Below are positions 1 to 64,000 of a stretch of 64,000 nucleotides of DNA, piece after piece (within the stretch, counting starts at the first letter, position 1; each line of letters opens with the position of its first letter). Source of the DNA: Lepidodermella squamata (lineage: Eukaryota > Animalia > Gastrotricha); the NCBI GenBank assembly GCA_047495785.1, contig JBLDXI010000017.1:3534001-3598000 (forward strand), in the 5' to 3' direction. A model generated the notes under the pieces. It did no database searches and was not told the DNA's origin. It worked only from the letters and a program-made list of their open reading frames with translations. A program made the translations under genes and the position numbers.

Positions 1-1490
1 CAAAAATCATATTTCTCGATAACCGAAAGTAGAGAGCAGGAGTCATTCTAAATAATATGCTGGTAGCTGTCAGTCAAGTATAGCTATCAATCGATCGACT
101 ATCAATAATCAAGATTCAGAGTTAAAGACATCAAAAACGATAACAGATCAGATCTGGGATAAAAAATGCACACTGAGCTTCTCTAGCAGAGAAGAGAAAG
201 CTTGCTTTCATGAAAATAAGAGACAAGATAGGAGAAATGGCTGCGGTAACACTCGAAAACTTGAAAAGAAGCATTCAGCTTGGTGATCACTTCTTCCAAG
301 ACAGATAAAGGTTTTCCATATACCGAATAACGAAGGCCCCGTTTGGACGATCGCCAAACACCAAGGGAGGAGAATATCGGTGTCGCAGCGCTCAGCTAAT
401 GGAGCGAGCGTTCGCGCCATCTCATCTCAACTCTGTCGCAACTGCGACGTCCCCTTGTCTGAAAACTCATTCCGATTAACCACTGCGAACCTTTCGTTTC
501 CCAAATATCTTTGAAAGAGATTCATGAAAAACGTATTGATTTGACTCATTTGCAAGCCGGTGATTAGGCAAGTTCAGTATAGCAAGAAGGACACCAAACG
601 AGGAAATAGAGACGGAAACAAAAACCTAACCGGTTCCACCCTAAAATTCGGTCAAGTTTATTTGAAGAAAGATGTTTTAGTTAGCTTTCATTGCTTAAGG
701 CCAGTTGATTTTGATTTTATTAGAAATATTGTGACAAAAGCTTTGCATATATAGTAATAATTAGTACCAATCAGCTATATTGGGAACCTTGACATATGTT
801 GATGTCTTGATGCGCGCGCCCGCAGTTTTGGGACTGGGTTATTCGTTTCCAACCTTCGCGAAGACCGATCCCCTACGGATGCGATGGATCTAAATCTATC
901 CTAGATCTAGAACATTTACTGCCAACTGCCTAATCTACTGACGACTGAGTGTGTGCGTGCAAGAGATGGCCTGACAATCTGATGACAAACGACGATGTTA
1001 ACAGTCAACTGAGCCAGTTTACTTATTCGCAATTTGCAGGGATTTCATGATTTTCAGTTTCAACATAACTCGTACCTAGACGCCGAATAGAAACGATCGA
1101 TGATGTTGAGCTCTCTTGGCTTTCCCTACAGTTTACATGTTCCAAGATTGCTTCATTATGATCGAAGATCGCACACTTTCTCTGTAAACGGTGGCTAACA
1201 CATATTCAATGCTAATAATTATTCATGTGGGTTAGCATTTGGCACAAAGTATCGCTTAGCGGCTATAGTTTGTTGAGGCTCATGCATATTCAATTTTAAT
1301 GCTTGTTTACTAGCTAGTGCAGCGATGCTGGTCTTGCTTTTCGCAAAATGATGCTCGGTAATCGAGTTTTGAGTAGGTATTACTTTTTGCTCCAGCACTG
1401 TTAAAGGTTTTGTACTTTTTGGTTGCTGATCGCCCTAATTTCTGAGAAGTAATTTGATTTGAATTAACGTAAATAGGTTTTAAAACGATC

Positions 1491-2831
1491 ATGCCCAGCC
1501 AACCAGTTGTCATTCGCGAGCTTGCAGGCACATTCGACAATCAGGCTGATGTGTGGTTCGATTTCGAAAAGTCGTTTCCTCACGATGCTATTCGCCATTG
1601 GTTCCAGAACCATAAGCACTGGAGCATATACCTGGGCATTGCTTACATCATAATCACATTGGCTGGGAAGCGTCTGATGGAGAAGCGCGAACGCTTTGAG
1701 CTACGATCTTTATTGCTGCTGTGGAATTGTGTTATGGCTGTTTTCAGTCTTTTTATCGCTGTACGTGTTAGCCCGTTTTTCTTTCGGCGTCTATATCATT
1801 CAACTGTGGTAAGATCAAGCATGCCAAAATGCGCGTTATCTCCAATTTAATCATTTTCAGTATGGAGCTGTATGTGACGGAAATTATGGTATTACAGCTT
1901 TCTCTTTTTTTAATAATTTCTTGAATCAAACTTTTATCCGCCGCCAACAGAAAATACAACCCCGGTAATATCTAAGCGTTTTTAATATGCTAATGCTAAT
2001 AAATTGCCTTTCAGATTGTTATGTGGCTGGAAGTATTTGTCATGACCAAAGCAATCGAATTCATTGACACGCTATTCATTGTTCTGCGGAAGCAACATTT
2101 GGCGTTCATTCACTGGTATCACCACGCCACAGGTTGCTAATTCTAATCTTGATGTTGCTTAAAACGGCAAATATTTTGTTGATTAAATGTAGTCGTGATC
2201 GTTTGCTGGTATGCCCAAGGTGCCACTCAAGGTAAAAATCAACTATCAGCAAAGCGTTTTTATACGAAAGTAATTACTCAGGTCCAGCAAATTGCATTTA
2301 CTACGTCGCCATGAACTCGATCGTCCACACAAGTAAAAATTGTTCATTGCTTTATATTTAGCTAACTATTTTTGATTTATGGCTAGTTATGTACACTTAT
2401 TACGGACTTCGAGTAAGCAAGACCCTTTTCAAATTTTGAGACATAATAACGAATTTTTTCTTAGGCTGCTCGTATCAAAGTGCCCAAGTTCATAAACATG
2501 ACAATAACCTCGATGCAAATAGGTTTGTGATATATTCAACTCGCGATCAGCAGATGTGATGTAATATTCCCTGTTAGGTCAAATGATTGTAGGAATAATC
2601 ATAAATGCTGGAGCAGCTTATTACACGTTCTTACGAAATGATAGACCCTGCGACGATGAGCCTCTTCAAATTGTCGTGGCTAGCTCGGTTTATTTGTCAT
2701 ACTTCTTCTTGTTTTGCCGATTTTTCTATCAGACCTACATCAGCCCGTCATCAGCGAACAAAGGCGCAGATATGCGATCGGGTGTAGCTTGTGCCAACGG
2801 TGCCAACTACAATCGCTCCAAGTTCGAATAA
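1491..2831 (+). CDS. ELOVL6: Very-long-chain fatty acid elongase (ELO/ELOVL family, ELOVL6/3-like), 9 exons, 301 aa
   Basis: Exons 1491-1808, 1861-1888, 1951-1964, 2015-2132, 2193-2231, 2282-2332, 2387-2412, 2465-2522, 2578-2831 join in frame (906 nt) via GT-AG introns. ELO motifs [42 protein letters not shown]. Exact paralogue uncertain. Confidence 0.93.
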
Positions 2832-5501: not shown

Positions 5502-5540
5502 TGGAAGGGAATACAAAAACTTAAATACCTTATACCTAGG

Positions 5541-10243: not shown

Positions 10244-12017
10244 CACGAATGTTTTGCATTTTTAGCTTTATAGGCTATATGCTAAATATCAGCCTTGAGG
10301 ATAAAGAATTAGGAAGCTAGCTTATGTGCAAGGGTTGGGGCTCAACACTCGCTGACCTGTCGATTTGAGGTTTGAGAACTACCGTTAATTAGTATAAAAG
10401 TTGATACTGTAGTGCAATATGGAACAACCTCTCGGGGCTCTCTTGGATTAGAGATGCACGCTGGAAGAGTGCTTGGGGTCATTGCTCGTGATCCAGAATA
10501 GCTTCATGGGGACGCGATCCTTCTTAAACATTGGTGTCGTAGCTAGGCCGACGTTTGCCGTATGGCTTTCACCGGCCCTCGGCGTAACGTACGATGCGTT
10601 AGATTTAAAATAGCATACAGGATAAGGAAAAAATTGGAAGCATTTGTGAAAAAATAAGAGGGTTTTATCACAAGACGCCTATTTTTCATAATTAAGCTGT
10701 CAACAGTCGTTTGACCTCGCGACTTTCATGAGATGTATTTATCTGTGAGTTTTGAGTTACAGTCGTTTTGATTGCTGCGTGACATGCGATTCGCATTGCA
10801 GCTTGATAGGGTGGCTACATCACATCGTACATCTCTAACGCATGTCATCAACATACAGGCTACATCTTCCAATTTCTTCTTGCGGTTTAAAGTCAGTAAG
10901 ACTTAGTGGAATTTTTTCATCGGTGGGAAATTGTGAAACAACCCCATGATTCCTTATTGTGCGAGTGTCCATTTATTTACCGGGAGGGATACTCGCCTGA
11001 GTGATTTGTATGACCAATCATTCGTCATTTAGAAGTTTGCACGTGAATTTCATTTTTAGCACATATTATAAGTTTAAGTTAGCATGCGTAACTTATGATT
11101 TAATATATCACAGGGCGGTCAATATTCGAATTAGTTGGCTGCATCCACTGCCACCCCGCTCTATTAGTCATTGCTGGCAGGCATGTTGTCTATAAGATCG
11201 CCTCCCCCGTGTAAATTTAATTCCCACCTACGATATTTAATTCATAAAATTGTTGTGTTTAGTAGGATTGTTTCTATCAGTGCGCCTGAAAACAAAGACC
11301 TGCGCGGGTTTTCATCAATGAATTGAGTTTTTTTTGTCGTTGAAGTAATAGCAATGTTCACGTGAATTGTTTCCCGGGGATTGTTTCTCTTATTTACAAA
11401 AAAATAACGTGCTCCTCTACATTCATATTGGCCGTGCATTTAAGCATTATTTGTGCGTAGAAAACTAGCTTGGAGCCGCTCATAAACCGTTGGTGGCGTG
11501 ATTCTTGAATGGCATGAGTGAAACAACTCCGGCTACACTAGGATATTCGGTCTCCTGTGCTAACTGCTTGATGCATATTACTCAGTTATGTCACCACTAA
11601 GACAGCGGATTCGAGGACAAATTTTCTCCCTAGCACTTATGTAGCGATAAATTTTTAGGTTTTGGAGGAAGTCGTTCGAACTTGGCAACCTGTATTAAGC
11701 GTGCTCTCTTTAGAGTTTTTTCTCATCCCATCTTGACGGAATGAACACGCACTGGAATCGTTTTTATATTATGCCATTGAATCGTAATGTAAACTGTTTT
11801 TTACCGGCTTGCGTATTTTTACATTCCCGCTCTGTGCGATGTTGCGTTGTACATAGAGAAATAGCTATGGTCTCAATAACTACTGCATTGCTGTTTTTTT
11901 CATTTTCTATAGAGTTTCCGGCAGGGTCTCTTAAGTTAGTGATACTGGTGGCTGTCTGTGCAGCTCTCATTCCAACAACAGCTCATAAACGATAGTTGGG
12001 CTGCATCAACTTCATCA

Positions 12018-16697: not shown

Positions 16698-17062
16698 ATT
16701 TCGGAACTTGGAAGGTTATGTCGGTAAAAAAGGCAGTGTCTTGGGTATGTCCAAGGTTGGTGCACACTCAAAACGAATGGCGTATTACTTCTAAGACGCA
16801 GCAGCGACGCATCGCGCGGATATCAAAAAAGTAAATTGCGCTGCCTAGGAACCAAAAGCAAAAATTAGACTGTACTAGTGATACTTCAGGGAGTACTCGT
16901 CTCATTAGGAGGCTGAATAGGAATGCTGAATAAGCCCGAGACCGCCAGGAAAATAAGCGAAGACCCATTCAAACATTAATTTTTCAATACAGCAGTTGAC
17001 GCATATAAACCCATTTTCCAAAGCATCGTACGGCAACAATTTATTAAATCTAGAAATTGTCC

Positions 17063-19892: not shown

Positions 19893-20874
19893 TAACATTT
19901 CGCTTTCCTGTCAGCATTTGGCGCCTCTCCCGTTGCTTCGAACTGAAAAACTTATTGAGATACTCAACCCATGGCATCTAGCATCTAGTATTTCCCAAGG
20001 TAAAAGATAGCCCCTGTCGTTTACGCCGCGTTCTCTTCGGTGTTTTTTTCTGATTACTGTACAGTGTACAGTGTACAGTCGAGTACGGTTGGCTGACTGT
20101 ATTTTCCCATTATCTTACGCTTGCTGTACTCGGTGTACAGTCGGACTTTTTCCGAAGTGCGAGTTCTTCCCCGACGTGGACAATGTTGCTCACATCTAAA
20201 TGCGCAGCAGAAAACTTCGTATTATCTTGAACACATCTTTCACTCGTGTGAAGGATGCGTTTAATGAGATACTGAGTTTCATTGGGCTAACTCGAGAGCT
20301 ATTCTTAGCGTAAATTTCTCGGCGTGAATTCGAAATATTAGCATGGCTGATACATCGAACATCGAACAAATACAATTGAATGCTCAAACTAGATTTTTAG
20401 TTGCACCTTTTGTTCCGAAGGAACGAAAGTGACCTCTTGAGCATTTTCCGTGTTGCCCTTTCCCCTTTTCTACATCAGCCATATGGAAGATGGAAGCACC
20501 TCCGAATTCCAAAAGGGCAGGGTTTTTTATGTTTGATCCGATTACAATGCAACTAATCACTAATCACTAATAGATACAACTTTCACAGGCGTTGTACACT
20601 CTGTACGACGCATGTATGTGTCATGAGCACGCCATCCTCATCGCACGCATTTTATATGTAATCACTATATATGTCTTGGTGGAGCTCTAGCTTGAAAGCA
20701 ATTGGGTGATTTCAGCGAAAAGATTTTGGTGGCTCGATCATATTTGCGTCAAATCACTGTCCAATATTACGAAAAACCGTTATACCCAAACGTTTCTCCC
20801 GGCGCGATCGTTATTTTCTCAACACTGATCATGTAGTATTGACTAATTACAATATTAAGCTAGGTAGTATTTAA

Positions 20875-21521
20875 ATGGCGGAGCTGCACGTATTTGGTCA
20901 ACTTGTTGGCGCTAGCGGGTTTCCAAACGACCATCGGCTATTTTGTAAATGGGGTGTTGCGGCTGGTATGTTTTTCTTGCTACGATATTAGTTAGATCTA
21001 TTTATATCTCTTGAAATTTATTAAGGAAATGCTTGGCGGGTCCTGGAAGGAACGAAAGAAGGCCAGACACAGGTTGATCATCCTGCTAACCAATCATTCG
21101 CCGTCTGGGCACATCCTATTGATGTTCACTTCGCCACAAAGGGTCTTCAAGGTAAGATCAAATGCTATTTTTATGAAATAGCAGCCCTATAATTATCATT
21201 TTATCAGGGTGGCCTAAGCTTTATTTTCAAGTTTGGAGGCATGATGAACACGGTAGATCTGAAATTTGTGCATATGGATTCTCGCATGTTCCGACGGCGC
21301 CCGGTTTCCATTCAATCGACACCCCTACATGGAGGCCTGTGGGCTCATTCTGGGAAGAAATTCAAAAGCGCTTTGTTGGAGGCGGCCCCGAGCTTCGTGA
21401 CATAGATAATGTGTACAGCAGCCCTGAAAGATTCAATCTACAGACTGCTACTATGGGCAGAATTCACATGACGTTGAATGTGGTACTGCGACACTTCGAT
21501 AAATTTGCTGTTGAATATTAA
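20875..21521 (+). CDS. B9D2: B9 domain-containing protein 2 (ciliary transition zone), 3 exons, 176 aa
   Basis: Exons 20875-20965, 21026-21151, 21208-21521 in frame. [17 protein letters not shown]...[41 protein letters not shown]. Confidence 0.95.
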
Positions 21522-24600: not shown

Positions 24601-25940
24601 CTCGTCGATTGGACAAATGTTAGGCAGGTCATGTTTTACGCCAAGTTCCCAATCTTCATGTCCTAATTAATCCAATTTTTTTCTATTAAAATGATAAAGG
24701 AACCTTGAAGTTTGTTACCATGCACAGGGGCAATGTGTACAAGGCCTGACCCAATATCACTGGTGACATGGTTGGAAGGAATTAGTGGACACAATCTAAA
24801 AAATGTATAAGTTCGACCTAGCAAATTTTCACTGATGAGCGACTAACTTAGTGGAATTGAATGGATGGCGATATCGGATATTTTCAATCTCAGACAACAA
24901 CATCGAGTTACTGCTCGAGCGCTCAAAGCGAAGCCCAGTTGTTGAAGAAATGCGATCAGCAACAGCAGTTGCCATCAAGTAACGTCGCGTCTCACATGTT
25001 GACGGTTCGCAATACCAAGCATACTCCATATTAGGGTTAAAAGCCACAGCCTCATTAGCAGGTAGCGACCATGGAGTCGTTGTCCATATCACCAAGTAAT
25101 CGTTAACCTTAGTGCTCATGGACGGTGACAAGCCGAGGGCTACGTAAGCGGAGAGACTAGAATGCGAGTTGTTATACTCCAGTTCAGACTCTGCTATAGC
25201 CGTTCGTGATGTTGGCGACCAATAAACTGGCTGCAAATTCTGAACAACCAATCCACTCTCCGCTAGTTTACCGAAGAGATCAAGTTGCGCGCTTTCGTAG
25301 CCAAAGTCGACTGTGCGGTAGGCATGAATCCAATCCGCCATAATACCCCATGACTTGAAGTCAGACATCTGACTTTTTATTGTGGACAAAGCGCTCTCCT
25401 TACAAGCAGCCCTGACGTCAACAGGATTATTCCGTGGCGATTTGTGTGACTTTTGAACGGCCATCTCAATGGGCAGGCCGTGGCAATCCCACCCAGGCCG
25501 GAAGAACACCTTTTTTCCTTTCATTACTTGATGACGAATGATCATGTCTTTCATCAGCTTGCGTAGTTAAACGGCATATTTAGTACTTGACAAGTTAACA
25601 AGGCAAAATTACTTTGTTGAGAGCGTGACCAACGTGCAATTTCCCATTAGCATACGGTGGCCCATCATGAAGAAAGAATGAGGTTGAGGCATGTTTTTCC
25701 AACTGGCGCTGATAAAATTCATTCCACTGAAAAACTATTGATTTTGCCAAGGATAAAAATTGCCATGGTTTAACCACTCACTGTCTCCGAAAATTTGATG
25801 GATTGCGCGCTACCGATTTTCGCCAAGTCGTGCACGTTGAATGATGTTTTAGGTAATAGAATTGTCTTTTTCCAACGGGAGTTGACTTCAGCAATATCCG
25901 AATATGATCGATTAATGACAGTTAGACAGAGTCTAGACAT
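21645..25940 (-). CDS. IARS2: Isoleucyl-tRNA synthetase, mitochondrial type, multi-exon
   Basis: [25 protein letters not shown] (HIGH motif), [62 protein letters not shown]-terminal CxxC...CxxC. Junctions checked are GT-AG. Confidence 0.95.
22858..23297. mobile_element. Mutator (MULE)-type MITE inside an IARS2 intron
   Basis: 52-bp TIRs (22859-22910 / 23245-23296, one mismatch) flanked by the 9-bp TSD TATTAACAA (22849-22857, 23298-23306). No ORF. Confidence 0.9.
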
Positions 25941-27272
25941 CACTTGGCTTTCTAGGAATTGAAACCGTTGTGGATAGAGACAAATAAAATGCAGCTCAAC
26001 TGCTTACTATTCCAATAGAGCTCAACAACCGCAAAACCTATGGTAATGTGCTATTGATGATTAGAGGGTCTGAATTGTCATCTAATAGCCTGACGAGGAA
26101 ACGACTGAACGATGAAAGATGCGAAAGTAGTCTCGAAGTTTGGCAAAATCACTGAATAAATGTTGGAACCATAAAAGGCTTTTCTCCAGCTACCAAAAAT
26201 GTAGGATGAATGGATATTAGACCCTGCCACCTGCCACCAATTCTGGTGATTTAACAGGGCTTCGGTGTGGTTGATAGTTGATATGAGGAAAAAACTGGTC
26301 ACCGATGATTCGGTGTTCGGTGTTCAAAGTGCAAAGATGGCAAAACAGAATGTAACAGAAAAGTATACAAATGCAGCTACTATATGTCAAGTCCTTACGG
26401 ACAACGGACACCTGCTTGGCAGTGCATTAATGCACGTAGCTGGTTTTGCGGCAAGTCGAGCTTGTCAGCTTGCGAAAGGACAGCTCAACGTTCAACAGTG
26501 TCTGACATCAGGGTCGGGTATGAGGACTAACATTGTCAGAGCTGCGGAGTTCGAGGTTCGGAGATTCGGAGGTTCACCTCGGTTTTCGGTTTGAACAATT
26601 GAACTAGTTCGATCGTCACTTCACCACACGGAGGCCGTGAAAATCCATTTTAGTTTCGAGCACGCGTTTCTGATTCCGGTAGAGCCATTTCAGCGAACAC
26701 GAATCAGGAAGAGCGAACACACGAGGTCAAGCTTATTTGAACAACCCGCCCTATCACTTCACAGTTCAAGGCCAGCAATTAATATTAAAAATATGTTTTC
26801 TTCGATAAGTTCAACCGTTATCAGCCCAATAGGATTCAACCTAATTTTATATAATGTGTTTTATGATTTAAAGTATGCGGTTTTGGCATTTTTGGCTGGT
26901 CGAAAACTTCGCGAACTTCGTTATTTGAAGTCCAACGTCCAACTTTTTGGTTCCTCAGCCTAACGACACCGGGTCGAAGTTCACTTTACACTTTTGTTAC
27001 ATGCTGTTACATTTTAGGTGTTACATATTCCTTTCTAACCCACTCCCATCCTAAACGTATGTGCATCTCTTGTGGCGTTGGTAGAATGTCGCCATCTACA
27101 ACCGCAAATCACAGTACTTATTCATCACCAGTCTCCCTCTTTGCCTTTTCATCAAAGATGAGGGTATCTTTTTGTGTAGCCTTTGCATATTTAAAGACAG
27201 CAGTTTCAATTTACCCATTCACTTTATCGCTCCTTTTTATTGTTTAGTTGCATTTATCTTAGTCATTTTATC

Positions 27273-28115
27273 ATGGAGGACAAGCCAACTTACATCAATT
27301 GGTGTGATCATGTTGCATTACCCATGCTGAACCAAATGACAGTCCTTGACTATTTTTGCAAGCCTACCAACCCATTTTACGACAAAACGTGCAATAATGA
27401 ACATCTCAGAATGCAAGGTTTTGGTTTAGTGTCAGAGCAATTAAGGTGGAACGAAACTATTTAACTTCTTCATGTTTTGAATCTTGGTATTAATATCCAG
27501 ATCAATGGAGGGAATCGAATTTATACTTCTACATGCTCAACCTCCAGATCTCTATGTGGTTCGCAAGCAGCATCGCGTGTCTCCGACGACAGGTTTTTTA
27601 GTTACGATACTCATCAAATAATCATTTCGTTTCGCGTTTCAGAGACTCCTCTTGTTGACTACTATATAATCCGCGGTGTTGTTTATCAGGCTCCTGATCT
27701 CGCTAGTGTTTTGAATGTCAGATTGCTGAATGCTGTTCACGCAATTCGCCGAGCGTTAGAAGAAGCTAGCAGCAGGGGTCGTTTCTCTCTCACTAAAACA
27801 AGTGGATCACTTTGGACCAATGACGTTGCTCTTCAGGCAGATTCGAATGTGGGAGCTAAGCGCAACGTTGGAAATTCTGTCAAGAGTCGCCAAAACGACC
27901 CTGATCGTCCACCAACTGCTTTTCAAAAAGGCCACACCGACCACGCTATTGCCGAACTCTATCGGAGGTTCCCTCCTAGTGCTGCTAATTCGAATTCAGC
28001 CGCACCTCCTGCCGCTCCTCAACCAGTACAACAAGCCGCTCCTGACAAATCACAAGCTAATGCAGCACCGGATGCTCAAGCTGCTGCTAACTTGAAGCGA
28101 TCCAAGTTAACCTAA
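27273..28115 (+). CDS. MED6: Mediator complex subunit 6, 3 exons, 245 aa
   Basis: Exons 27273-27445, 27501-27592, 27643-28115 in frame. VLDYF...NPFYDKTCNNE, MEGIEF...QPPDLYVVRKQ, YYIIRGVVYQAPDL. Confidence 0.94.
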
Positions 28116-28198
28116 TTGTATTTTGTCACCGTCTAACTAATTCACACTTTTCTGAAGAAACCCAAGCTTCAATAATTTTCTTATTTAGTGCTTTAAAA

Positions 28199-29390
28199 AT
28201 GGTTTGTGTGAAATCAGTCTGCTCAACGGCGTGGTGTTTGACTCGCAGGGTCGCCACGTTTTTGATCTGCATTGCCACTGCTATTTATGTAATTCTGCCT
28301 TATTCGCTCAACAACTATCCGCATGTTGTGGACTTCTTTGTCTTTCTAAACCATGGTAGGTAAATGCTTTTGATTCGATTTTTATAATCGTGTTTCCTTA
28401 TAAGTTGCCATGCCATTCACGAGAAATTTCAGCGATTTGGCTCATTTTGGTCTTGATCATAACCACGCAACTTCGCATCACGTTCCAACACCTGATGGCG
28501 CTCTTCTTGGGGCATGGTTGATTCAACCACCGCCGGGTGTAAAAGCTCGAAACCAGGTAATCCTATACCATCATGGTAACAGCGGCACCCGAGGCACTCC
28601 GCATCGCATAGCACTGTATAAAGTCTTGGCCGATGCCGGTTTCGACGTTGTAACGGTATAAAAAGCGATAATTTAATCCGATATACAATTATTGTTGCAT
28701 TTGTTGTAGTTCGATTATAGAGGATATGCTGATTCTGCTTGTGTGGCAAGCTATTGCGAGCCAACAGAACAAGGTCTGATCACTGATGCAACTACTATGT
28801 ACCAGTGGACTCTTGGAAGCATTAAAAAGCGCTGGGATGGCCACAAAAAGTCAGTGATAATTTGGGGACATTCTCTTGGCGGTGGTGCTGCAAGCAACTT
28901 GGCGCGCACTTTGTGTTCCGATACGTCGAAGAACTGCGATGAAGCGCGAGCTTTAGTTCTAGAATCAACTTTTTCTGACGTGGTCCAAGCCGCTATCCAG
29001 TACCCTCTCGCTTGGTTAGATTGCCTTAAGTTTCATTGGGTGTTGTAATTTTTGTTGAAAATTTCCAGGGCGTTGCATGTGTATAAACCTGCGCTTGAAA
29101 CGTTAATAAATGCGCTTGCCGAGAGAAATCTTTACTTCAACAACACAGCTTCGTTAGCGAAACTGCGACTGCCTGTGCTATTGGTTCATGCTGAGGATGA
29201 TCTGATTGTACCCGCTTCTCTCAGCCATCACGCTTATACCCATGCAGATTCTGTTCGTCCGGATGATTGGCCAGCTATGGAATACAAAATGTTCCCATCC
29301 TCCTACGGCTATGGTCACCGGGCGCTTCACGACGCTCCTGATTTGGTGCCTACTCTCCTCCAGTTCCTGGAGAAAAATACGAAAACTTGA
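28199..29390 (+). CDS. ABHD12: ABHD12-like alpha/beta-hydrolase (lysophospholipase), multi-exon
   Basis: N-terminal TM segment, ILYHHGNSGTRG..HR, DYRGY, nucleophile motif GHSLG, LESTF, HAEDD, GYGH. Confidence 0.88.
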
Positions 29391-31334
29391 CTACTGAGAT
29401 TATGAAATGTGACTTACAACTACTATATCCGAGTTTTTATATTTTGTTGATTTGCGATGTGTCTCGTCAAACATCCTCGTAGTCCTTCAGCATCGCTCAA
29501 ATTTGTGGGTAAATTGTAACTTGATACGAAATGGTTTGATTCTCTACCATCCTGATTATTGACACGTTTTGTTGATTATTTCATGATCAAAGTTTTATTG
29601 CCAACAGCAGCGTGTGTATTTTAATGTTATATTTCGTTATTTTGACAACCGATATCATTAAAGTAATAAGGGGTACGTGGCAGCGATACCCCTAATTGTG
29701 CGATCATTTTTTGGAAAATAAAACAGCAGTGTGATAAAAATAATGGTTCTTGAAAGTTGGTTCTCCTATCCAATCAACTCTATTTTCTAGCCCATCTGAA
29801 ATATGATCCAATCCCCTAAATGGTTCAAGGTTCCAGGTCTTTTAAAAATTACCCAGAAACTTTTCGGATTTCATGTTCAAATTATATACGAAAGAGCAAC
29901 TAACCCTAATGGAAAACTGGTACGAGGTACCGGCTGAGAACATCGCGGTATCAACCACGGCTTTGGAATGGATCAGCTACCTATGTACATTGGCGAGCGG
30001 TATCCTAAAGTTTTCAATGCCTAGCAGACTTGAGTTAAACCAATTGCGAGCTAGGTTTGGCTAAGAGGTTCAGGCTAATTTCTGAAGCTAAAATTTGAGC
30101 GGCGGTGTTGAGCAAAGTTCACCAACTAAGCACCATCATTGGCTAAGCATAGTTTACATAGCTGCTGAGTACAAATAATTAGCTGATCAAAACAAATCTG
30201 AATCCAGTAAAACGTGGAGTGCCCAATAACTTGGAAAAATTTACGCCAAGCGTCTATTCACGAAATAACGAAATCGTCAACTTTCCAACTTTTTTTAATA
30301 ACGGATGAATGGCTCATAAATAAATAAATAGAAAGATTGGGTCAGTGAGTAATTACAGCAACATTTGTCGGCATGAAATTTTACTTTGCGATGGCAAAAT
30401 TATAAATAAACTGAAAGCATATTTTCTTGCTAGGTGCCTATGCTTGGGATTCTTTTTCGCCGGTAGCTTTCGCCTGAAAAGCTTGCAAGAAGCGCTGAGA
30501 ATCCGCCGAATGACAAATGTTTTGGTAATCATCATGTTGCTTGTAATCTCTGCGAGAACCTGCCTATATGACGACCATCGCGGCTACCTCAACTTAAATT
30601 CTTTCCATTTTAACATAGCGGTCGAAATAATTGCCGGTGTAGGTACGCTCAGATTCGCGCTAATAAGATTACATACATTATTCCGGCATTGTAAAGACGC
30701 AACAAGATGACAGCAGACAGCATGCTGCTGGAAAGCCGTGCCGCTTGTGGCGCTGCTGGGCATTGACCACGAGTGTGAAAAATGAATGCATCGTTGTCTT
30801 TGTCGTAGGAGATATTCATTTGACTTCAACGTTACACTGAGGCATTGTTGAATTATTATGGATATTACTGTTCACAAGAAGACAACACCCGCTGCCGTAA
30901 AGAATTGCTCTACAATTGTTTGCTGCATCAAATTTCACTTGACAGTTATGTGCGCCGGTTGCCTCTATCAATTATTAGTACAATAGCACCGAATTTTGTG
31001 CAGCGCTCACCTTATCTTCACATGTATCCCACGTTCGGCATCGCCACTTGAGCGCTTGTTTACAATAAATCTAGTAGTAATTGCTTTTCAACAATATTTA
31101 ACATTTTTGAGATTGTGTTGGCGTCGAACACGAGATGGTAATTACTTTACGCTATTCTTGGTAGGACATCAGGATGCGAGCCGGTGCTTGCGGCCAACCA
31201 CATTATGCTGACACCTTGACACCCTGGCACATGATTACATCTATAATTCATCATATCATTTTTTCCACACCCGAGAGTGCCTTGAGAGAAAGTTAATGAA
31301 TACCTACTTGTATCGCATAAGATAGGGCTTTAAA

Positions 31335-32819
31335 ATGGTTTCATTATTGTTTTGCGGAGTGGTCGCGTTTATCGCAACCGCCAACGCTGAGCAAAGTAAG
31401 TTATTCATCCCGATCTAAAAAACCCATTCCCTTATTGAATATTTCCAGCACATGAGCAGCAGTTCAGTGGTAAATGCGGCAAGAGCTTTATTCCGCCACC
31501 AAACGAAGTACCCGGCCGCAACTGGACAGTTCAGATTCTACCAGCCAGCACTGCGAAAGCGAATGAAGTACCTTGGCAGGTATAACTGCGCATAATTAAT
31601 ACCTATAGTTGGCTTATCGAATATTCATTGCTAGGCTCGGATATTGGTCGATGGACTGTTCGCTTGCACGTAATAACCTTGTCAGGTTGACGCGATGTTT
31701 CTTACTTTTTAATTTCTAACATGCAGTGGCGCAATTGTCAGCAGTCAGTCAGTAACCACGTCGGCCAACTGCTTGGAACGCGCATTAGGGGATGATGCTG
31801 GCGGTCCGGCTGGTCTTCTACGCCTGCGAGTTATCGTTGGCGCTGCTTTCGATTTCAGGGCCGGTCGCTATGGAGAATCTATTTTCAGGGCGTCGCGCAT
31901 TTCGACACACGGCAACTACATCGAAGATCCTAACAAAAATATCAATGATTTGGCTTACATCACTGTGGAAGGAAGCATAGGTATGCTTTTCTGAAGAATT
32001 TCAGGCACTTATACTAGAAAAATTCGTTATAGGCTCATCTAGCTCCACGGGACAGACCGATGGAAAGCGTTTTGTTGACCAGAGCTATGTTAGACCTGCC
32101 TGCGTTGTAAGCGATCCACAGGCAGATATAGCCAAGCCTGGTCATGTTGCTGTTCTATCGTATTGGAAGCGCCAGGATGTCAAGAAGAGCGGGGTTGGAG
32201 GTGAGTTCAAATTTGTCATTTGTAAATGTACCTATAACATCTCCAATTCCTATTAATAGCTCTCAGTTATGATCAGTGCAGTTCTGTTGAAAACATATCA
32301 GCGTCCTATCTGCCTTTGCCGAATAAGGCTTGGTTGAGAATTGTGCCAACTGAAGACTGCATGGAATATTTTCCCGTTTACCGGCGCCTATGGCCAGCAG
32401 ATCATTACTTGTGCGCTGAGGCAAATCCTATCGCTCTCAAGGCCAATATTTGCTGCGTAATTTAACACATTTTGTCTCTGTTACTTATTCTGATAGCTCT
32501 TATTCCTAATTCATAGGCTGAAGGAGGAGCGCCATTGGTTCAGAAGTATGGCGACCGTTGGTTCTTGATTGGAGTCTTTTCGCAAATAGCCGGCTGTCAA
32601 TACAACCCTGATGAAGATAGTGTAGTCCAACCCCCGCTCTTGCTGTTTGCCGGCACCACTGGAACTCAGGTATCTTGGATGACTCTGCATCAGCCTGATG
32701 ATCCTGAAGTGACAACAGAGCGACCTAAAGCACTCATCTTAGCTGCTTCTGGGGCTAGATATGGATTATCTACTTCGCTCGGCGCTCTGTTAGCGTTTAG
32801 CCTTTTCTTCAGGCTATAA
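31335..32819 (+). CDS. Secreted, probably GPI-anchored, catalytically inactive trypsin-like serine protease homologue, 7 exons
   Basis: Signal peptide MVSLLFCGVVAFIATANA. S1-fold landmarks CG, EVPWQA, CTGAIVS, TSANC, NDLAYI, VRPAC, LCA, AEGGAPLV, WFLIGVFS. Hydrophobic C-terminus LGALLAFSLFFRL. Confidence 0.82.
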
Positions 32820-35885: not shown

Positions 35886-35989
35886 AGTAAATTCGCAAAA
35901 AATCTAGTTTTTCAATGAAAAGTAATGTTGGCGTTAAATAATTGTAGTGAAGCTTAAGGTGGATGTTGCTATTGTTAATCGCGAGAGGG

Positions 35990-46139: not shown

Positions 46140-48279
46140 TTCGGATGCTAGTTAGTAAATTAATTAGTATTTCCCTATATTAAAAAATGGAACAGCAGCT
46201 AAAAATTTCCATCGCAAACATTACGATACACTCTTTTTGGGAAATAGGCATTGTCTTACTAGCAGCCTGAGGACCTAGCCAGGATGTGATCCCATGCGTT
46301 TCAGCGCAAACATCAAGTAATATAGGGACGAGCCCAAACGCATAAACACGCATGCTCAAGTTGTACACAAACAAGCTAACTTCATAATAACCAGTTTACT
46401 TTATGGACAACGAGGGTGACGGTGCGTGTGAGACGGAGCACTAATCGTAATTCGGGGCGTAAACAGTGGCGGTATGATGATGAGAGTCACTTCATATAGG
46501 TCTCCAATTTTATAATAAGGCTGAAAACAATCGAGATTCCAACGATCATTCATCGCCCGCATAAAACCTGCGATGTTGGGAAAGCTGAATGCACAATAGG
46601 CCAACGATCAAATAGAAAGGTTAGCAACAGGTTTCTCGATACTTCATTTCATGCTTATGCCTCAAAAGATACGTACTTGACACATTTGGAGCTACGGTTT
46701 TCGGCCGATGTCGGCGCCATCGAAATTTTTTAGCACACGCACACGCAACTTTGAACTTCATCGATTAATCCAAATATTAAATAATCATTTAGCGTATGCG
46801 ATCAAATCGATTATTGATTATCGATAAAATCGATTTTGCCACGATTGAACTTTTTCAATTCTCAACGCAAACACTGCATATATAAGACAGCGGCATGTCA
46901 CCTAGACCCCATGTTCTTATCCTATGGCTAGAAAAGATACAAATACAATGGCATGCAAGAATTCAAAAGAAGTATAAAATGGCGCCGAATATTCAACAGA
47001 GGCGTACTCCAAGATAAGGTGGCAAATTAAACATATTGTTTTTAATAAAAAAAATGCTGAAGCGTATTTATTACTGCGCAAAACTCTTTCTTAACGAATG
47101 AAAAAAGTAGTGCTTTCTTTGGCAAGCGTCCAAAATTTTCATCAAGCTAGACACTTTCAAACTACGTGAAATGGGCATACAAAACGTCAAATTAATAAGT
47201 ATTCTTGTGACGCATTTGTTTAGGAGTTCAGAGTCCGAAAGGGCGATCTTTCATGCAAAGGTCGGGGTTTTCATGTTTTGGACTTTAGACTGCAAAAAAA
47301 CATAAAGCTATAATATTGGAGATGTCTTAAATTGGCATCATCCATTAGCCATTAGCAATAGTTTTGGCTAAAAATCGCCATTATTTTCATAGGTTATATA
47401 TTACCGCCGATAACTTAGTTTATGACTAACGCCAATATACTTATTAGAACTTGTTGGCCTTAACAGTTGGGTGAGGTAAACGTAGACATTTTAAAAGGTG
47501 TTAGCTAAAAGGATCCTACAAAAAAGCAGCGAGACTTGGTTTTGAATGCAGAATAAAGTCTTGATAAGAAAACGCCGGCGTCATACATCACTGAACATAA
47601 CAAAAATATACAAATCTGACAGCGACTAATGACGCCGAATGCAGCACGAAAATGTTTCTTATCCAAGCCAGATGATTACTTGAAAAAGCCGATCGGCAAG
47701 TAAGTTTTTATTTGTGCAACAGAGAAATAAGGCATCTTTTCAATCGGCGGGTTTCCTGATCGGAAAATTTCTGACAAGTACAACAGTGAATCACAAAGAT
47801 CAGAAAGTCTGACAAAATCTCAGATCTCAGCTAGTCTTTTACTCGAATTCTTTGTTTGAAGCAAAACTGAACTGACTAATAGCCTGGTATGGAATTACTT
47901 TAACCGTTGTTGGAATAAGCAATCAACAGGTGGTTTGAAAATGAATTATCAGATTACGTCCCCTCCATGAATTGAAGCTTCGATATGCTGCAAAACGTTG
48001 AGCTAGACTAGTCAAAAACTTCAAAGCTACTGTACCATAAGTCGTCCGGTACCCGGTATTAACACGATTTCGTCTCAGCTGTCTCAGCTGATTTGATGGG
48101 ACGACAACGATCACAGGTAACAAGGGGTTTCGTGCCCTCGATTTGTCCCCAAATCAGCTGATTTGTTGGCACCCTCTAATAATTTTCCTACCAAACATCT
48201 GTTTGAACGAATAGTCGAAAAAAGAATAAAGAATTATTAATTACGTAAGACTTTAATTATAAGTCAAATTGATCTGTAC

Positions 48280-48412: not shown

Positions 48413-51211
48413 ATGGATGTTGAGCATCAAGCTTTACAGAAACCAGTTGTCCACGACCGTGCTGCTGAAAAAATTCAAGCTGTTTTCACATACTTCTTGG
48501 AAACGTAATTGATTATAAGTTATAGTTTCGCGTTGTGTTTCACTTTGAATATGCCTAGATGGAAAGAAGGCGACGCCTTGAAGTACATGCCTGCAATTAC
48601 GCAGCTGGATACTCAACCAGGCCGAAACACCATGTCTGTGGCTTATGCTGATGTTGAAGCTTATGATAACGGTTTGGCAACAGCAGTGAAGGAAAATTTT
48701 TATCGATTTTATCCTTATCTCTGCCAATCGGTCCGCAATTTGATGAATGAACGAACCAAACGCGGCGGTTCTAATGCTGATATTAACATTGCGTTCAACG
48801 GAGTTCCAGAAAAGTTGAAGTATGCCCTGTTATTCTCTAATTATACTTGAAATATTGTTACGAAATTTCCAAATTAAGGATTCGCGAACTGCGGTCGAAG
48901 CATGTTGGAACTCTCACAACAATCACAGCGCAAGTTACGAGGACACATCCCGTTCACCCTGAGCTAGTTCTGGGATCTTTTGTGTGCGGCGACTGTCAAA
49001 CAGGCATTAAAAATGTCCCTCAACAATTCAAATATTCAGAGGTTAAACTGGGAAACTGTTGCTAACGACACACTTGTATTAACCTAATTTTTTGAACTAT
49101 AGCCTGCTATCTGTCGTAATCCCGCGTGTGGCAACAAAAAGCGCTTCAAGTTGGATTTGGATTCCTCGGTTTTTGTCGATTTTCAGAAGCTTCGAGTACA
49201 AGAAGTCCAGGAAGAGCTTCCATGCGGTAGCACTCCGCGAACGTAAGGCATGTGTGTTATTTCATTAAGTTGACTATGTTGGATGTTATAGTTTGGAGAT
49301 AATTGTTCGAGGAGAATCAGTCGAAGTAGCTCAGCCCGGTGACAAGTGCGAATTCACTGGTACGCTGATTGTGGTACCTGATGTCTCTAAATTGAGCTTA
49401 CCTGGCTCTGTTGCGAAGCCGGAACAAGGACCACGGGGCGTTGACTCGGCAGAAAGCGAGTCCGGAATTCGTGGACTGCAGTCTCTTGGCGTGAGACACC
49501 TGAACTATACCCTAGCTTTCCTAGCCACGGCTGTGCGCCCCGTAAATATGCGCCTTGGCAATGTCGACTATAATCCTGAGCAAGTGGTTCCCGAATTTTT
49601 GGAGAAGACATTGGATCCTGAGCAGTGGGAGAAGATTTTCCGCATGTCGCGCGATACTGATCTATTGCCAAACATTTGCAATAGCATTTTCCCGACCATT
49701 ATCGGGAGCGATGAGATCAAGCAGGGCATTTTGTTGATGCTTTTCGGTGGTGTACCTAAAATTACTGCCGAGGGTAGCCATCTTCGTGGTGATATCAACG
49801 TGCTCATAGTAGGCGACCCTAGCACTGCCAAGTCTCAATTCTTGCGTCAAGTCGCTGCAGCAATGCCTCGTGCTGTTTACACTAGCGGTCAAGCTACATC
49901 TGCCGCTGGTTTGACTGCTGCTGTCGTTAAAGATGACGAAACGGGCGATTTTGTCATCGAAGCGGGTGCGCTAATGTTAGCTGACAACGGTATCTGCTGC
50001 ATTGACGAGTTCGATAAAATGGACATCAAAGATCAGGTAGCGATTCACGAAGCCATGGAACAACAAACGATTTCCATCACGAAAGCCGGTGTCAAGGTAT
50101 TCCTATTACGTTAACCTCTGTTTGTGATTAAAGTGTTGTTTTATTGAGAAAAGGCTACTCTGAACGCCCGAACTTCCGTCTTAGCTGCTGCTAACCCTGT
50201 CGGTGGTGTGTACGATCGTTCTCGCCCGCTACGCCACAATGTCAACTTCAGCGCTGCTATCCTTTCGCGTTTTGATTTGTTCTTCGTTCTTCTTGATGAA
50301 TGTGATCAAGTAGTTGACTACGCCATTGGACGTGAAATCGTTCAACTTCACGCGTCACGCGGCCGCTCATCTGCTGTTCATCGTATTTACTCGAAAGAGG
50401 AGATACAGTCCTATCTGATGTTTGCAAAGCATTTCAAGCCACGCATGACCAAGGCTGCCGCTGAGCATTTGTGTGCTGAGTACAAGCGGCTGCGTCAACG
50501 CGATGCCACTGGAGGTCAACGTTCTGCTTGGCGAGTTACTGTTCGTCAGCTGGAATCTCTCGTTCGCTTGTCAGAAGCATTCGCTCGCCTCCACTGCCTT
50601 GACCGCGTCGAAGTCGGCCACGCCGAGCAGGCTTGTCGTCTTTTGAGCAAATCAGTCATCCGCGTCGAACAGCCGGAGGTCTGCCTGGACGAAGAGGAAG
50701 AAATCGTCACTCCGCCACTTCCGCCAGTTGAGATTCCTGAATCTGCCCCGGTCACGCAAGGGGAGCAAGCGCCTGCTGATGCCTCAACTGGAAAGGAGAA
50801 AGTCAAGCTCACTTTGGATGAGTACCGCCGCATTAGCAACATGCTCATATGCCAACTTCGTCGAGTCGAGCGGCAGGCTGAGCAAGAAGAGAGTGCGGAT
50901 GCCGAGCAGGCTGATGGCGCCCCACCGACTGGACTCTGGCGCCGCTCCCAGTTGGTTAATTGGTACCTCGGTCAGGTTGTAGATGCCGTGGGCAGTGAAG
51001 AACAACTGCTTGCCAAGAAAAAACTGATCAAGGCTGTGATTTCCAAGCTGAAAAACGTTAGTTGACGCAACCATTTTTTCATGCGACATCTATTGTTCCC
51101 ATTTTTTAGACCAACGTTGCGATTGAGCTCAAGTGGCCGGGCGGCGCGGCAGAAGAAGATTCAGACGACCCTCTTATTACGCTGCACCCCAGTTACTCTG
51201 CTGATGACTAA
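48413..51211 (+). CDS. MCM6: DNA replication licensing factor MCM6, multi-exon
   Basis: [21 protein letters not shown], Zn-finger CxxC...CRNPAC, Walker A GDPSTAKS, Walker B IDEFDKM, SRFD arginine finger, [11 protein letters not shown]-terminal [10 protein letters not shown]. Confidence 0.96.
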
Positions 51212-53933: not shown

Positions 53934-55360
53934 CAGGGTATAAAATATTTAAACCATTCTATACATTGAATGAAAAACGCAAGTAAGAAATAAGCTAGAA
54001 GTTAGCTAGAATACCGCAAAATCCACGTTAGCTGGTTGCAGTATCTTTTAAAAGGCAGAGGCTTGGGTTCGATTCACAGAATAAATGGCAGTGACTTGTG
54101 TAAACACAGCAGTATGTAAAGCACAAAAATCTACTCGTAAACAGCGCATATGTAAGGCAAGATGTGATAAAATTGCAGTGTTTTAAAAGCAGCAAAGGTA
54201 ATTGCGTGAAATGTAGAAGCTGTCTCGTGTAATCACTTGAAAAAAGGAAAAATGAACATTCCGCGTTCGAAAATCGCAATTGTTGATTCTGTATCGGGAG
54301 TTGAACACTGAACACCACTAAAGCGTAATTGGCATTAATAACTAATAAATGGTCACGGTTGATTCGAAATTATGATAAAAAAAACCGTTAACTTCATAAC
54401 AGATCCAAAACGACAGACGGCAGTAATATACCTATTCACAACGATTGCGAGAATTTACCTGGCTCAACATAACTGTTGAGCTTCAAAGCCGACTAAGTAC
54501 TCGAGAAACCCAGAGTTCATCCTGGTTTTTGAGGACTCAGAAACGAACGAAGCAGTGGGCGCGAGACTTCCAAACTTCCAAAACCGCAGAATCAGGGGTG
54601 AGCAGTTTTGCCATTTATCGCAACTTGACGCAAATATAACCTGAATATCATTTTCTATTATATGTCAATAATTTACAACATTATAATTTTATTGCTTTGA
54701 ACCTATATCCCGTATCTCGAAGAACGCTTCATGCGAGCATGCACGCCAGTTGTTTCTCTTTTGGAGGAAAGAGGTTTTTCTCCCTCTTGAGTATTGAGTC
54801 TTGAGCTCACTCCTGGCCGGCTGTCACCTCTTGTTGAATGCTCCGGTCATTTCAGCCGTATTTCAATGTTCAATGCCAGCATTGTTTTCGGTGGTATTGG
54901 GTATTGATTGTCCTCTCTGATCGGTCCAATTTAGGGACGAAAAGGGAAGATTTTGCTTGTTTGGGGCATTCTTGACTTCTGGCTTGGATCAGTCATGCTC
55001 CTCCTGATAGGTCGTCATCGGCGTCCCATGTACCTGCAAGGGCAATTTGAGGAAGAAAAAAATAAGACTTGCTCATTTCTTTACTATGCGTTAAATCTGC
55101 CTTTGGAAAAAGCAAAACAATCGATATACAGCCTTGATGTAGGTGCAACTTCATCCAATTTATAAACTGATTTTAACTTCTTAAATAGCCTTTCTATGCT
55201 AACATTCTAATCTCGGAGGAGTAGAGAGGAATAGGGAATTGATATTCCTCCAATATTCTAACGCCCCGTTGATAAACGAAAAATGTGCATTGTGCATAGT
55301 TGGCTTTATTTTCAGAATATTCAATACTTGTTATATGCTTTAGGAGCTGACATTTTTGAA

Positions 55361-57284: not shown

Positions 57285-57376
57285 ATTTGTGCAGCGATGC
57301 TTACATATATATAAATTGTTGGGATGCGGCATTGCAGCTTTAATTTCTTTGTTATTTAGAGCTATAAAAAATATTG

Positions 57377-58384: not shown

Positions 58385-58541
58385 CGCGAGCAAACTCGAT
58401 CAGCAACAGCACTCTTGCGATTACATTTGAAAACGATCTCACATCTCACTTATTGTCAGAAAATAACTACTTATTCGTGCCTTGCCCATTAGAAAACAAT
58501 TTTTTCAATAAATTATATCCAGACTGATATTTCATCCTGAA

Positions 58542-60430: not shown

Positions 60431-60709
60431 TCATTTCTTAGCAGGACGGCCTCGTTTTCGAGCAGAGCCTTCGGCAGCTTGCGATTTTTTCTCTACTTTC
60501 CCACCTCCAGCCCTGAAATAAATAGATCAATTTAACTTAGGTATATCAGTCCTGAACAGGAATTATTACTTAGGAGGACGACCGCGGCCACGCTTGACAC
60601 CATCCTTCGCTACAACTTTAGCAGATTTCTTTTGATCAGGACTTTTGGGAGGACGACCTCTGCCGCGCTTGGCAGGCGAGCCAGTGTCAGCGGATGCAGC
60701 TTCAGCCAT
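60431..60709 (-). CDS. HMGA: HMGA-like small AT-hook chromatin protein, 2 exons, 73 aa (missed by the ORF track)
   Basis: Exons 60709-60570 and 60512-60431. Three AT-hooks: KRGRGRPPK, KRGRGRPPK, RKRGRPAKK. Confidence 0.88.
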
Positions 60710-61152
60710 CAAAATCGTCAATAAACTTCTAAATTAACATAAAAAAGATAATGACCACCACCGAATTTAATAAACAATATCGATGTATAAAGACAACAGG
60801 GAGTGGAGCAAACTGGATTAGTACCCAGATCGACGAAGATCATCTGTGAAGATCATGAAAATATAAAATTCATAACCAAAACCAATTAGCACATTTTGAA
60901 TAAAACCAGGTCACGTTTGGCAACAATATGCTGACTACAAAATATGACATAAAATAAAGGGCGTTCAGGGACGGCTTTAGCCGACTAGCACTAGACTGAA
61001 CATATACAGAAGAAATTTCTGGCGATATTATCAAGTTTGGCTAACGCAGTTGCCGTCAAGATCATATGTGTTCCAACAAGCATGTGAATCAACAAACTTT
61101 ATCACAGATCTCAAACATGCACTGTTTTGAAAATGTCACGGAATGGCATAGT

Positions 61153-62509: not shown

Positions 62510-63825
62510 CGCGCGGTGTCAAACTAATATCTAACAATACCAAATAGCAATTAGCTTTTCATAACCATATAGCGCATAGAGCGAGTAAATCAAGAGCGCA
62601 CTTGATGCTTGACGGGTAGACGCAAAACGCTGTAAGCTAGTTTCTTCGGCCGATTTAAATGCAATGTAAAGAATAATAAAGAACGAAGCCAAACAAAAGT
62701 GTAAGATAGCCAAAAGATATACATAAAATCTAAAGGGCATTTACCAAGCAGAGGGCAGAGGTGTTAGACAAAACAGAAAACAGACACTAGGCACGCTCTA
62801 ATTTGGCAACGCTACGCCGTCGATCAAGAATTGTCTATACACTTCGAAATTTAACCGCCCAAACTTTTGTCAGGTCCTAGTTCCCAAGTCACGACATGCA
62901 ACCAAACTACAATAAAGCTACCTTCAATCGATCAACGATTTGTCCTCACGAAGAAATTCGCGCGCTTTTCTCAGGCAAGCGCAGTAAATTTGAAAAGTTT
63001 TAGCCCTTGACAGAATTTTTGTCGGCACGTCGGTCAACTATTATTATAATCTAAACCTATTAAAATATAATTATAAAATGTTGGTATTAGTATTGGCTTC
63101 ATTGACGACCTGAGCCGCAGCCCTAAACGTCAGAAAGCCCGAAGTCGTCTTCCTGTTGACCACTGCTACAGCAACACCACTATTCAACGAACAGTTTTCT
63201 ACCGTGGCATGGCGGCGCGGAATAACGCAAACTGCTTCATCCGGCAAATGAACTCGTTCAAACACACGCGTCAAGCTGCCTACGTCGTCAAATTCGTAAA
63301 ATAACAACTAGGAGAAATTATTTTATTAGATCCGTAATCTATGCTTGTGATTAGCTTTTTGTACTCTATTGTGCCCCCCTAAAGATTGTTGAAACCAGCC
63401 CTTACGCTGACCTTATGATCAATGGTCATACCACTGAGTAGTTCGCGGTGTATATGGCTTGTCATTGCCCTACCATACCCTATCATATTCAGTTCGACAA
63501 CTATACAACTCATATTCCCTTCCCTGCCTTCGGTCTGCGGCAAAGAGAAAGGTCTGCAACTTTCTTGCATCCACCAACCACTGGATGCTGGAAAAATTCC
63601 ACCTCATGCCTGACAAGTACTGCCATTTAATCACTTGATTAGGCTATACAAGATTTCTACAATAGGTATATCAGTAAAAATATCAAAAATCTCACAAGAT
63701 TAAATAGTCTCGAGTACCTAATTGACTCAATATTTATAATTAATATCATTGTATTACTATCAGAGCAAAACTAGAGTTCCACCTTACACCACGATATTAC
63801 GTTCTTTTCTCTAGTAAGATTTATT

Positions 63826-64000
63826 ATGGATTCTTTTTCGGGCAAGCCCACTGTCCGATGTCAGCTCGGCCGCCATCTCGCAGAGACTCCATACACTCAT
63901 GGCGTTTCCAGCTCGGATGCTCATAACCGAGCAATTAAATCTGAGCCATCTGATGCGGAGTTTCGAAGAGCTGGAGGCACTCCAAGTTCTGCTCTCGAGA
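63826..64000 (+). CDS. Possible 5' end of a gene running off the window
   Basis: Pyrimidine-rich acceptor TTCTTTTCTCTAG (63814), then ATG 63826 open to the window end. A second frame is also open. Confidence 0.3.
   Translation, partial: MDSFSGKPTVRCQLGRHLAETPYTHGVSSSDAHNRAIKSEPSDAEFRRAGGTPSSALE

Follow-up and report, generated by a model that had tools for sequence, protein, structure and literature searches.

A multi-copy spliced leader joined to messenger RNAs in the gastrotrich Lepidodermella squamata

Introduction

Why does a TAG stand just upstream of nearly every start codon in a stretch of the genome of the gastrotrich Lepidodermella squamata? The stretch in question, here called the window, comprises 64,000 nucleotides (nt) of contig JBLDXI010000017.1 (positions 3,534,001 to 3,598,000 of assembly GCA_047495785.1; GC content about 43%), and a first-pass annotation made from its letters had read these TAGs as unpaired 3′ splice sites and proposed that the animal caps most of its messenger RNAs (mRNAs) by spliced-leader (SL) trans-splicing. 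Such trans-splicing is scattered over the animal phyla, and whether it had one origin or many is still debated. We report here that two unrelated genes of the window, MED6 and a protease homologue, give RNA contigs with the same leader joined exactly after a genomic AG, that this leader is encoded outside the window by a multi-copy family of SL RNA genes, and that many L. squamata mRNAs are very probably capped in this way.

Results

A common non-genomic leader on MED6 and a protease homologue

RNA contigs were examined over window positions 25700–31600, which hold four of the sites listed in the first-pass annotation (IARS2, MED6, ABHD12 and the protease homologue). Run X2 (2024) is DNA-like and comes from a second coded organism. 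Run X1 (2015) had been labelled RNA only as a guess, but its contigs skip six GT..AG introns of 49–55 nt and it is therefore RNA. The sites in this interval are as follows, a slash marking the splice junction or its predicted place.

27245–27247, plus strand: MED6 trans-splice acceptor, TTGTTTAG/TTGCATTT, from the RNA junction; exon from 27248, 25 nt before the ATG at 27273
27260–27262, plus strand: MED6 TAG listed earlier; within the 5′ untranslated region (UTR) of the trans-spliced contig and not the observed junction
31319–31321, plus strand: protease homologue trans-splice acceptor (AAG), CGCATAAG/ATAGGGC, from the RNA junction; exon from 31322, 13 nt before the ATG at 31335
31323–31325, plus strand: protease homologue TAG listed earlier; not the junction of the RNA contig
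28186–28188, plus strand: ABHD12 candidate acceptor, TTCTTATTTAG/TGC; a spliced X1 contig (record 5) ends at 28187, on the AG
25952–25954, minus strand: IARS2 predicted acceptor TAG; ATG at 25940

The MED6 contig (record 3, 437 nt) is aligned over 27246–27443 and has a loose 5′ tail of 24 nt, ATCTGCGAATTTGATTTGTGTCTA, and the contig of the protease homologue has a loose 5′ tail of 22 nt, ATCTGCGAATTTGATTTGTGTC, at 31318. When read on into the genome letters, each contig gives ...ATCTGCGAATTTGATTTGTGTCTAAG followed by the gene, with the junction directly after a genomic AG, and the same non-genomic tail of 22–24 nt is thus carried by two unrelated genes. Whether reads run continuously through the AGs was a check set in advance, and at both genes the contigs instead stop at the AG and give way to the common leader. 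The first-pass annotation was right about a junction at an AG close to these two start codons and wrong about the exact TAGs (ending at 27262 and 31325), the junctions lying at upstream AGs (27247 and 31321). In each gene the AG used is the upstream-most of its cluster, that is the TAG at −25 of MED6 (listed, −10) and the AAG at −13 of the protease homologue (listed, −9).

The leader is encoded by tandemly repeated genes outside the window

The leader was not found in the window, even with up to three mismatches allowed, but has 45 matches in the genome (121.2 Mb, 151 contigs) and none in the reversed control. The junction of leader and splice donor, ATTTGTGTCTAAG/GTATGTATC, has 44 matches, 38 of them exact, on at least 14 contigs and again none in the control, and many of these copies form tandem arrays that repeat about every 680 bp. 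The SL RNA gene that had been predicted, a leader followed by a GT donor, therefore exists, in at least 38 exact copies. Arrays are also present on the window's own contig (C17), at more than 1.78 Mb from the window and, relative to MED6 and the protease gene, on the opposite strand, which excludes cis-splicing for these two genes.

Twenty-five distinct copies of the SL RNA gene were compared. The 30-nt leader, AACCATCTGCGAATTTGATTTGTGTCTAAG, is invariant except at positions 14–17, which read TTTG, TTTA, TTAA or TATA and lie inside the first AAUUUGA motif. (Both RNA contigs have the TTTG variant.) The GTATGTATC that follows the leader is also invariant, the donor being AAG/GTATGTATC. The middle region varies between arrays and forms a hairpin in single-sequence prediction only. 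A 3′ hairpin of seven pairs is conserved through one-sided changes and one two-sided change, and the RNA ends in a UUUAAAA-like tail, giving a total of about 92 nt. Upstream, conservation begins abruptly at TTAACC, with a GGGCGGTTGAAAATT box at about −33 to −18 which resembles a small-RNA promoter, and the RNA is likely to start at AACC, a 5′ end of the leader that we infer from this conservation. Nearest to an Sm site come AAUUUGA and AUUUGUG, both of which lie in the leader, and UCUUUAA, at the 3′ end. When five arrays were scanned by E-value, no Rfam family, SL1 and SL2 included, was matched apart from one chance match to a long non-coding RNA, and no 5S rRNA gene was found in the same five arrays.

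Two sequences from elsewhere resemble these genes. On the metagenome contig JACCDR010895355.1 there is an intact SL RNA gene whose 30-nt leader, donor and 3′ hairpin are the same, and OGCL01009087.1 holds partial leader–donor units arranged head to tail (leader/GTATGTAT, then another truncated leader).

It might be argued that the TAG motif is a core-promoter or initiator element, or else the acceptor of an ordinary cis-spliced 5′UTR exon, and that the mRNA 5′ ends are local. Like the initiators of compact genomes, the motif does keep a short and constant distance to the ATG, and reads cover none of 12 or more of the genes. The leader on the two genes is nevertheless not encoded in the window and occurs only in multi-copy small genes with a GT donor elsewhere, those on the window's own contig being on the opposite strand, and X1 depth is 0 across 590–790 nt upstream of the MED6 and protease acceptors. 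For these two genes a local origin is already refuted, and as a general account of the TAGs we regard it as very improbable.

The leader at the 5′ ends of LINE-like elements

Dispersed elements resembling long interspersed nuclear elements (LINEs) also start with the leader, which ends exactly at ...CTAAG (C4:652785; C19:3601625; C54:552112 and 564230; C7:4113104; C2:993644). In these elements a gag-like first open reading frame (ORF1), which includes a CCHC knuckle, precedes an endonuclease-type ORF2. Their leader is full-length or 5′-truncated (ACCATCTG... or ATCTGCG...), and their upstream flanks are unlike the promoters of the SL genes. Either the leader is trans-spliced to LINE RNAs ahead of retrotransposition, or these RNAs are transcribed from master copies that were inserted into SL genes where leader and donor meet; one LINE-like insertion lies within a C17 array (position 746).

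These copies bear on the concern that the shared tail might be an artefact, either of contig assembly or of template switching in the library onto an abundant small RNA. The contigs are indeed de Bruijn contigs of a single run, and fold-back chimeras occur in the same run at 25928–26411. Both junctions, however, fall exactly at the GT donor of the SL RNA and exactly after a genomic AG, and the dispersed genomic LINE copies have a leader ending at the same base. An artefact of this kind is in our view barely conceivable.

TAG is enriched and CAG depleted upstream of start codons

A TAG is present at all 17 positions listed in the first-pass annotation (16 genes, the LRP11-like gene having two), 8–25 nt before the ATG, and follows an AT-rich stretch at every site. 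In addition to the sites in the RNA-covered interval these are the following predicted acceptors, which like that of IARS2 were identified from sequence only (minus-strand sites are given as plus-strand coordinates p to p+2).

1474–1476, plus strand: ELOVL, TAG; ATG at 1491
11993–11995, plus strand: SPTLC2-like gene, TAG; ATG at 12018
17051–17053, plus strand: orphan gene, TAG; ATG at 17063
20861–20863, plus strand: B9D2, TAG; ATG at 20875; further AGs at −7, −15 and −38
35904–35906, minus strand: INSM-like gene, TAG; ATG at 35885; sole AG within 60 nt upstream
46148–46150, minus strand: LIM gene, TAG; ATG at 46139
53959–53961, minus strand: RhoU-like gene, TAG; ATG at 53933; a 2-codon upstream ATG follows the TAG
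55341–55343, plus strand: PUM3, TAG; ATG at 55361
57357–57359, plus strand: EFCAB2, TAG; ATG at 57377
60729–60731, minus strand: HMGA-like gene, TAG; ATG at 60709
62531–62533 and 62524–62526, minus strand: LRP11-like gene, two TAGs; ATG at 62509
63812–63814, plus strand: ORF at 63826, TAG

In 15 of the 16 genes the ATG is the first in-frame ATG downstream of an upstream in-frame stop and the starts were therefore not picked to suit the TAGs. Pfam supports MED6, PUM3 (CPL/PUF), the SPTLC2-like aminotransferase, MCM, the class I tRNA synthetase, ELO and LIM. No encoding contigs are on record for two single-exon products, those of the INSM-like gene and the orphan at 17063. Trinucleotides were counted in positions −33 to −1 of the 16 starts, with the expectation taken from −333 to −34 of the same genes.

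TAG: 19 observed, 6.4 expected; the most enriched of the 64 trinucleotides
CAG: 0 observed, 5.5 expected; the strongest depletion among the 64
AAG: 6 observed, 6.1 expected
GAG: 2 observed, 4.6 expected

Words of TAG-like base content (TGA, GTA, GAT and AGT) are at expectation. The chance of a TAG in 26 positions against the flank background is 0.29 per gene, which bears out the rough 0.3 of the first-pass annotation and gives a probability of 1.9e-7 for at least 16 of 18 genes. It should be noted that the AT content is 72% in −33 to −1 against 59% further upstream, and that TTA, TAA and ATT are also enriched 1.9–2.8-fold; if the AT-rich composition of the region itself is used (T.40, A.32, G.15), the chance rises to 0.39 per gene and the probability, by hand arithmetic, to about 2e-5. 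MCM6, earlier listed as having AAG, also has a TAG 6 nt beyond the AAG (TATAAGTTATAG), 25 nt before the ATG at 48551 (window positions 48526–48553). At the 43364 gene (minus strand, 365-codon ORF) no AG was found at −5 to −30; either this gene is not trans-spliced or its true start lies in an upstream exon. The start-proximal TAG observation as such is confirmed.

Annotation-free tests for a genome-wide signal covered the window and a further 200 kb drawn from seven contigs. Of the four designs, one took the first ATG of long ORFs and scored codon usage, one looked at noncoding-to-coding transitions, one at every NAG that has an ATG-initiated ORF after it, and one was stratified by how far away the upstream stop lies. 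In none of the four was the TAG signal recovered, even inside the window where it is known to be present. The filter for noncoding-to-coding transitions recovered two of the 16 starts listed earlier, and the stratification was confounded by in-frame TAG stops. As the scans miss the known signal in the window they are without power, and speak neither for nor against a genome-wide one.

Start-proximal and cis acceptors compared

The first-pass annotation had also taken the start-proximal TAGs for an acceptor class distinct from that of cis introns. Acceptor words were counted in four sets.

RNA-confirmed cis introns: CAG 5, TAG 0, AAG 1
Strict cis-intron prediction over 264 kb: CAG 10, TAG 6, AAG 2 (about 5 of 18 expected to be false)
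Strong-donor introns of window gene models, hand-filtered: CAG 0, TAG 10, AAG 2
Start-proximal sites as listed earlier: CAG 0, TAG 16, AAG 2

The strict predictor was noisy when set against reversed controls (47 against 69; at the best setting, 5 against 18), and greedy exon-chaining models over-extended genes through spurious introns, so that only the strong-donor introns of 45–62 nt from these models were used. Between one third and one half of cis acceptors are TAG, against 89% of start-proximal sites, where there is no CAG at all. Of the two proven trans sites one has AAG in place of TAG. The contrast is suggestive and, as TAG is frequent in cis introns too, lends weak support to the start-proximal TAGs as a class apart.

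Operon-like gene pairs

In two places a predicted acceptor closely follows the stop codon of the preceding gene.

28116–28188, plus strand: MED6 stop to ABHD12 acceptor, 73 nt, with AATAAT 15 nt before the TAG; putative operon-like pair
57285–57359, plus strand: PUM3 stop to EFCAB2 acceptor, 75 nt, with the acceptor TTTGTTATTTAG/AGC; putative operon-like pair

The ABHD12 and EFCAB2 acceptors are alike (UUAUUUAG). The geometry of the spacers suggests that MED6–ABHD12 and PUM3–EFCAB2 may be operons resolved by the same leader.

Extent of trans-splicing

Several results weigh against the view that the leader caps many mRNAs. Direct RNA evidence covers only two genes, and in both the proven junction differs from the listed TAG, which means that further listed TAGs may be bystanders. 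The ABHD12 contig has no leader letters listed, its end on an AG fitting a junction without showing one, and the IARS2 RNA contigs are fold-back chimeras. Assembled contigs moreover show presence and not proportions, and un-trans-spliced forms may coexist with the spliced ones. As regards the SL RNA itself, its fold as a whole is no better than that of shuffled sequences (z = −1.26), and no canonical Sm site (R A U4-6 G R) was found downstream of the donor in the 25 copies. Since known SL RNAs have divergent Sm sites (PMC7986045), the missing intronic site lowers the likeness to SL RNAs without removing it.

In a rival state of affairs trans-splicing would serve a minority of genes, and most of the TAGs would be a by-product of AT-rich flanks, of stop codons in 5′UTRs and of the standing of TAG as the most frequent 3′ splice word in this genome. 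In its favour, the leader was found on two of the four genes in the stretch where RNA was examined, the proven junctions are not at the listed TAGs, the flanks are AT-rich as described, TAG is frequent in cis introns, and the annotation-free scans gave no genome-wide signal. On the other side, TAG tops the enrichment in spite of a depletion of G, words of the same composition are not enriched, CAG is absent, the probability stays near 2e-5 even with local composition, and the scans were powerless. We consider restriction to a minority of genes unlikely. Of the proposal that most mRNAs are trans-spliced, the process itself stands by the leader on MED6 and the protease homologue, and its extent, directly seen in those two, is for the remainder our inference, as is the share of genes affected. 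Likewise the signature at nearly every gene is, beyond the two RNA-proven genes, a matter of sequence statistics, from which the other 14–16 genes would be expected to use the leader as well.

Other observations in the window and genome

The X1 contigs at about 25928–26411, beside the 5′ end of IARS2, include three ‘opposite strands’ joints (fold-back chimeras or antisense RNA). X2 is 90–95% alike to the window over 25700–31600, with insertions and deletions in intergenic DNA (27132–27134, 31250 and 31301); no differences are listed at the acceptor clusters 25952–25954, 27245–27262, 28186–28188 and 31319–31325. Two short repeats were also noted.

26230–26266: short multi-copy element; X2 depth jumps to about 1300 and many contigs stop with differing loose ends (TGGATGGATGGATG...)
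30281–30330: another short repeat, in the interval from ABHD12 to the protease gene; X2 depth climbs to about 4000 at 30295, where there are eight contigs and loose ends to left and right

Both arms of the species-specific microRNA Lsq-Mir-Novel-6 (PMC6468455) are present exactly once each in the genome, 102 nt apart as published, which marks it as that of L. squamata or of a closely allied strain or species.

Discussion

A model for leader addition

We propose that an SL RNA of about 92 nt would be transcribed from at least 38 gene copies, in arrays of about 680-bp period on other contigs and far off on the window's own contig, and would give its first 30 nt to an unpaired 3′ splice site 8–25 nt upstream of a start codon. 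The upstream outron would be discarded, leaving a 5′UTR of 13–25 nt plus the leader. The AT-rich tracts ending in TAG would be these 3′ splice sites, and where AGs are clustered the upstream-most, the first after the AU-rich tract, would be used, as in both genes tested. Trans-splicing probably also separates polycistronic transcripts (MED6–ABHD12 and PUM3–EFCAB2), at acceptors 73–75 nt past the stop.

Comparison with known trans-splicing systems

Published leaders (PMC3795323 and PMC7986045) were compared with that of L. squamata in 30 tests, and no significant similarity was found to flatworm, nematode, cnidarian, Ciona, dinoflagellate or euglenozoan leaders. The 46-nt Hydra leader gave p = 0.005 in a free-end alignment, which was not counted, being one of 30 tests. 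Alignments with the four flatworm leaders of PMC3795323 gave p values of 0.07–0.57, the best being that with Schistosoma mansoni (p = 0.07–0.13).

Gastrotrichs have been placed next to flatworms (PMC6468455) and there are points of likeness to the flatworm system. S. mansoni has a 36-nt SL on a 90-nt SL RNA (PMC7986045) encoded by tandem multi-copy genes, and the L. squamata RNA is about 92 nt from clustered multi-copy genes; both leaders begin AACC and contain GAUUUGU. Flatworm acceptors are UUNYAG, with UAG favoured in some groups (PMC12582326), and the start-proximal sites of L. squamata are mostly UAG. On the other hand flatworm leaders typically end in AUG and are about 36 nt long (PMC3795323), whereas that of L. 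squamata has 30 nt and ends in UAAG, and the long Sm site of flatworms, AGUUUUCUUUGG, has no counterpart in the L. squamata SL RNA.

L. squamata also has features in common with Caenorhabditis elegans: acceptors stand only a few nt ahead of the ATG, a large proportion of the genes is apparently affected, operon-like pairs have spacers of about 70–75 nt, introns measure about 50 nt and the genome is compact. The nematode leader is 22 nt long against 30 nt here, and no operon-specific second leader was seen in L. squamata. The acceptor word of C. elegans is UUUUCAG, in place of the UAG of L. squamata. In dinoflagellates the exon element AUUUUGG is read as an Sm site. Dinoflagellate leaders have this element within the exon (PMC3795323), and the sole Sm-like element of L. 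squamata, AUUUG, also lies in the leader exon; the lineage and the sequence are nevertheless unrelated, and the L. squamata motif has three U and not four, its first copy being polymorphic among gene copies. Tunicates (Ciona and Oikopleura), rotifers and chaetognaths are patchy lineages with one or few leaders, with operons, and with genomes that are in many cases compact or rearranged (PMC12460157), and the Ciona leader differs in sequence from that of L. squamata.

A further reading can be framed, which we put forward tentatively and think doubtful: the trans acceptors would form a class of their own (UAG after an AU-rich and not pyrimidine-rich tract, CAG being excluded), served by an SL RNA which lacks an intronic Sm site and has its sole Sm-like element in the leader. 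A second such reading is that the system shares ancestry with that of flatworms. If the former is true, the acceptor itself would separate outrons from introns, and the SL small nuclear ribonucleoprotein would be built unlike other animal SL ribonucleoproteins. If ancestry with the flatworm system is shared, trans-splicing would be ancestral to the gastrotrich–flatworm clade.

A new lineage and its consequences

No paper linking gastrotrichs or Lepidodermella to spliced leaders or trans-splicing was found in the published literature (the survey of Douris et al. 2010 was outside the scope of the search), the spliced-leader literature on Spiralia has nothing on gastrotrichs, and the leader sequence of L. 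squamata was found in no paper. The L. squamata genome paper (PMC11660948) has no word starting with ‘splic’, ‘intron’ or ‘operon’, and a 2025 list of trans-splicing lineages (PMC12460157) gives nematodes, tunicates, rotifers, platyhelminths, chaetognaths and perhaps ctenophores, with gastrotrichs not listed; cnidarian leaders have also been published (PMC3795323). L. squamata is a new lineage for a known mechanism. As gastrotrichs are in most accounts the nearest relatives of flatworms, the gastrotrich leader, its SL RNA gene family and the map of acceptors offer a direct test case for shared as against independent origin with flatworms. For work on the animal itself the consequences are practical, as gene models, transcription start sites and operon structure of L. 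squamata will be wrong if the leader is ignored, and the leader can serve as a universal 5′ primer for full-length complementary DNA from single tiny animals.

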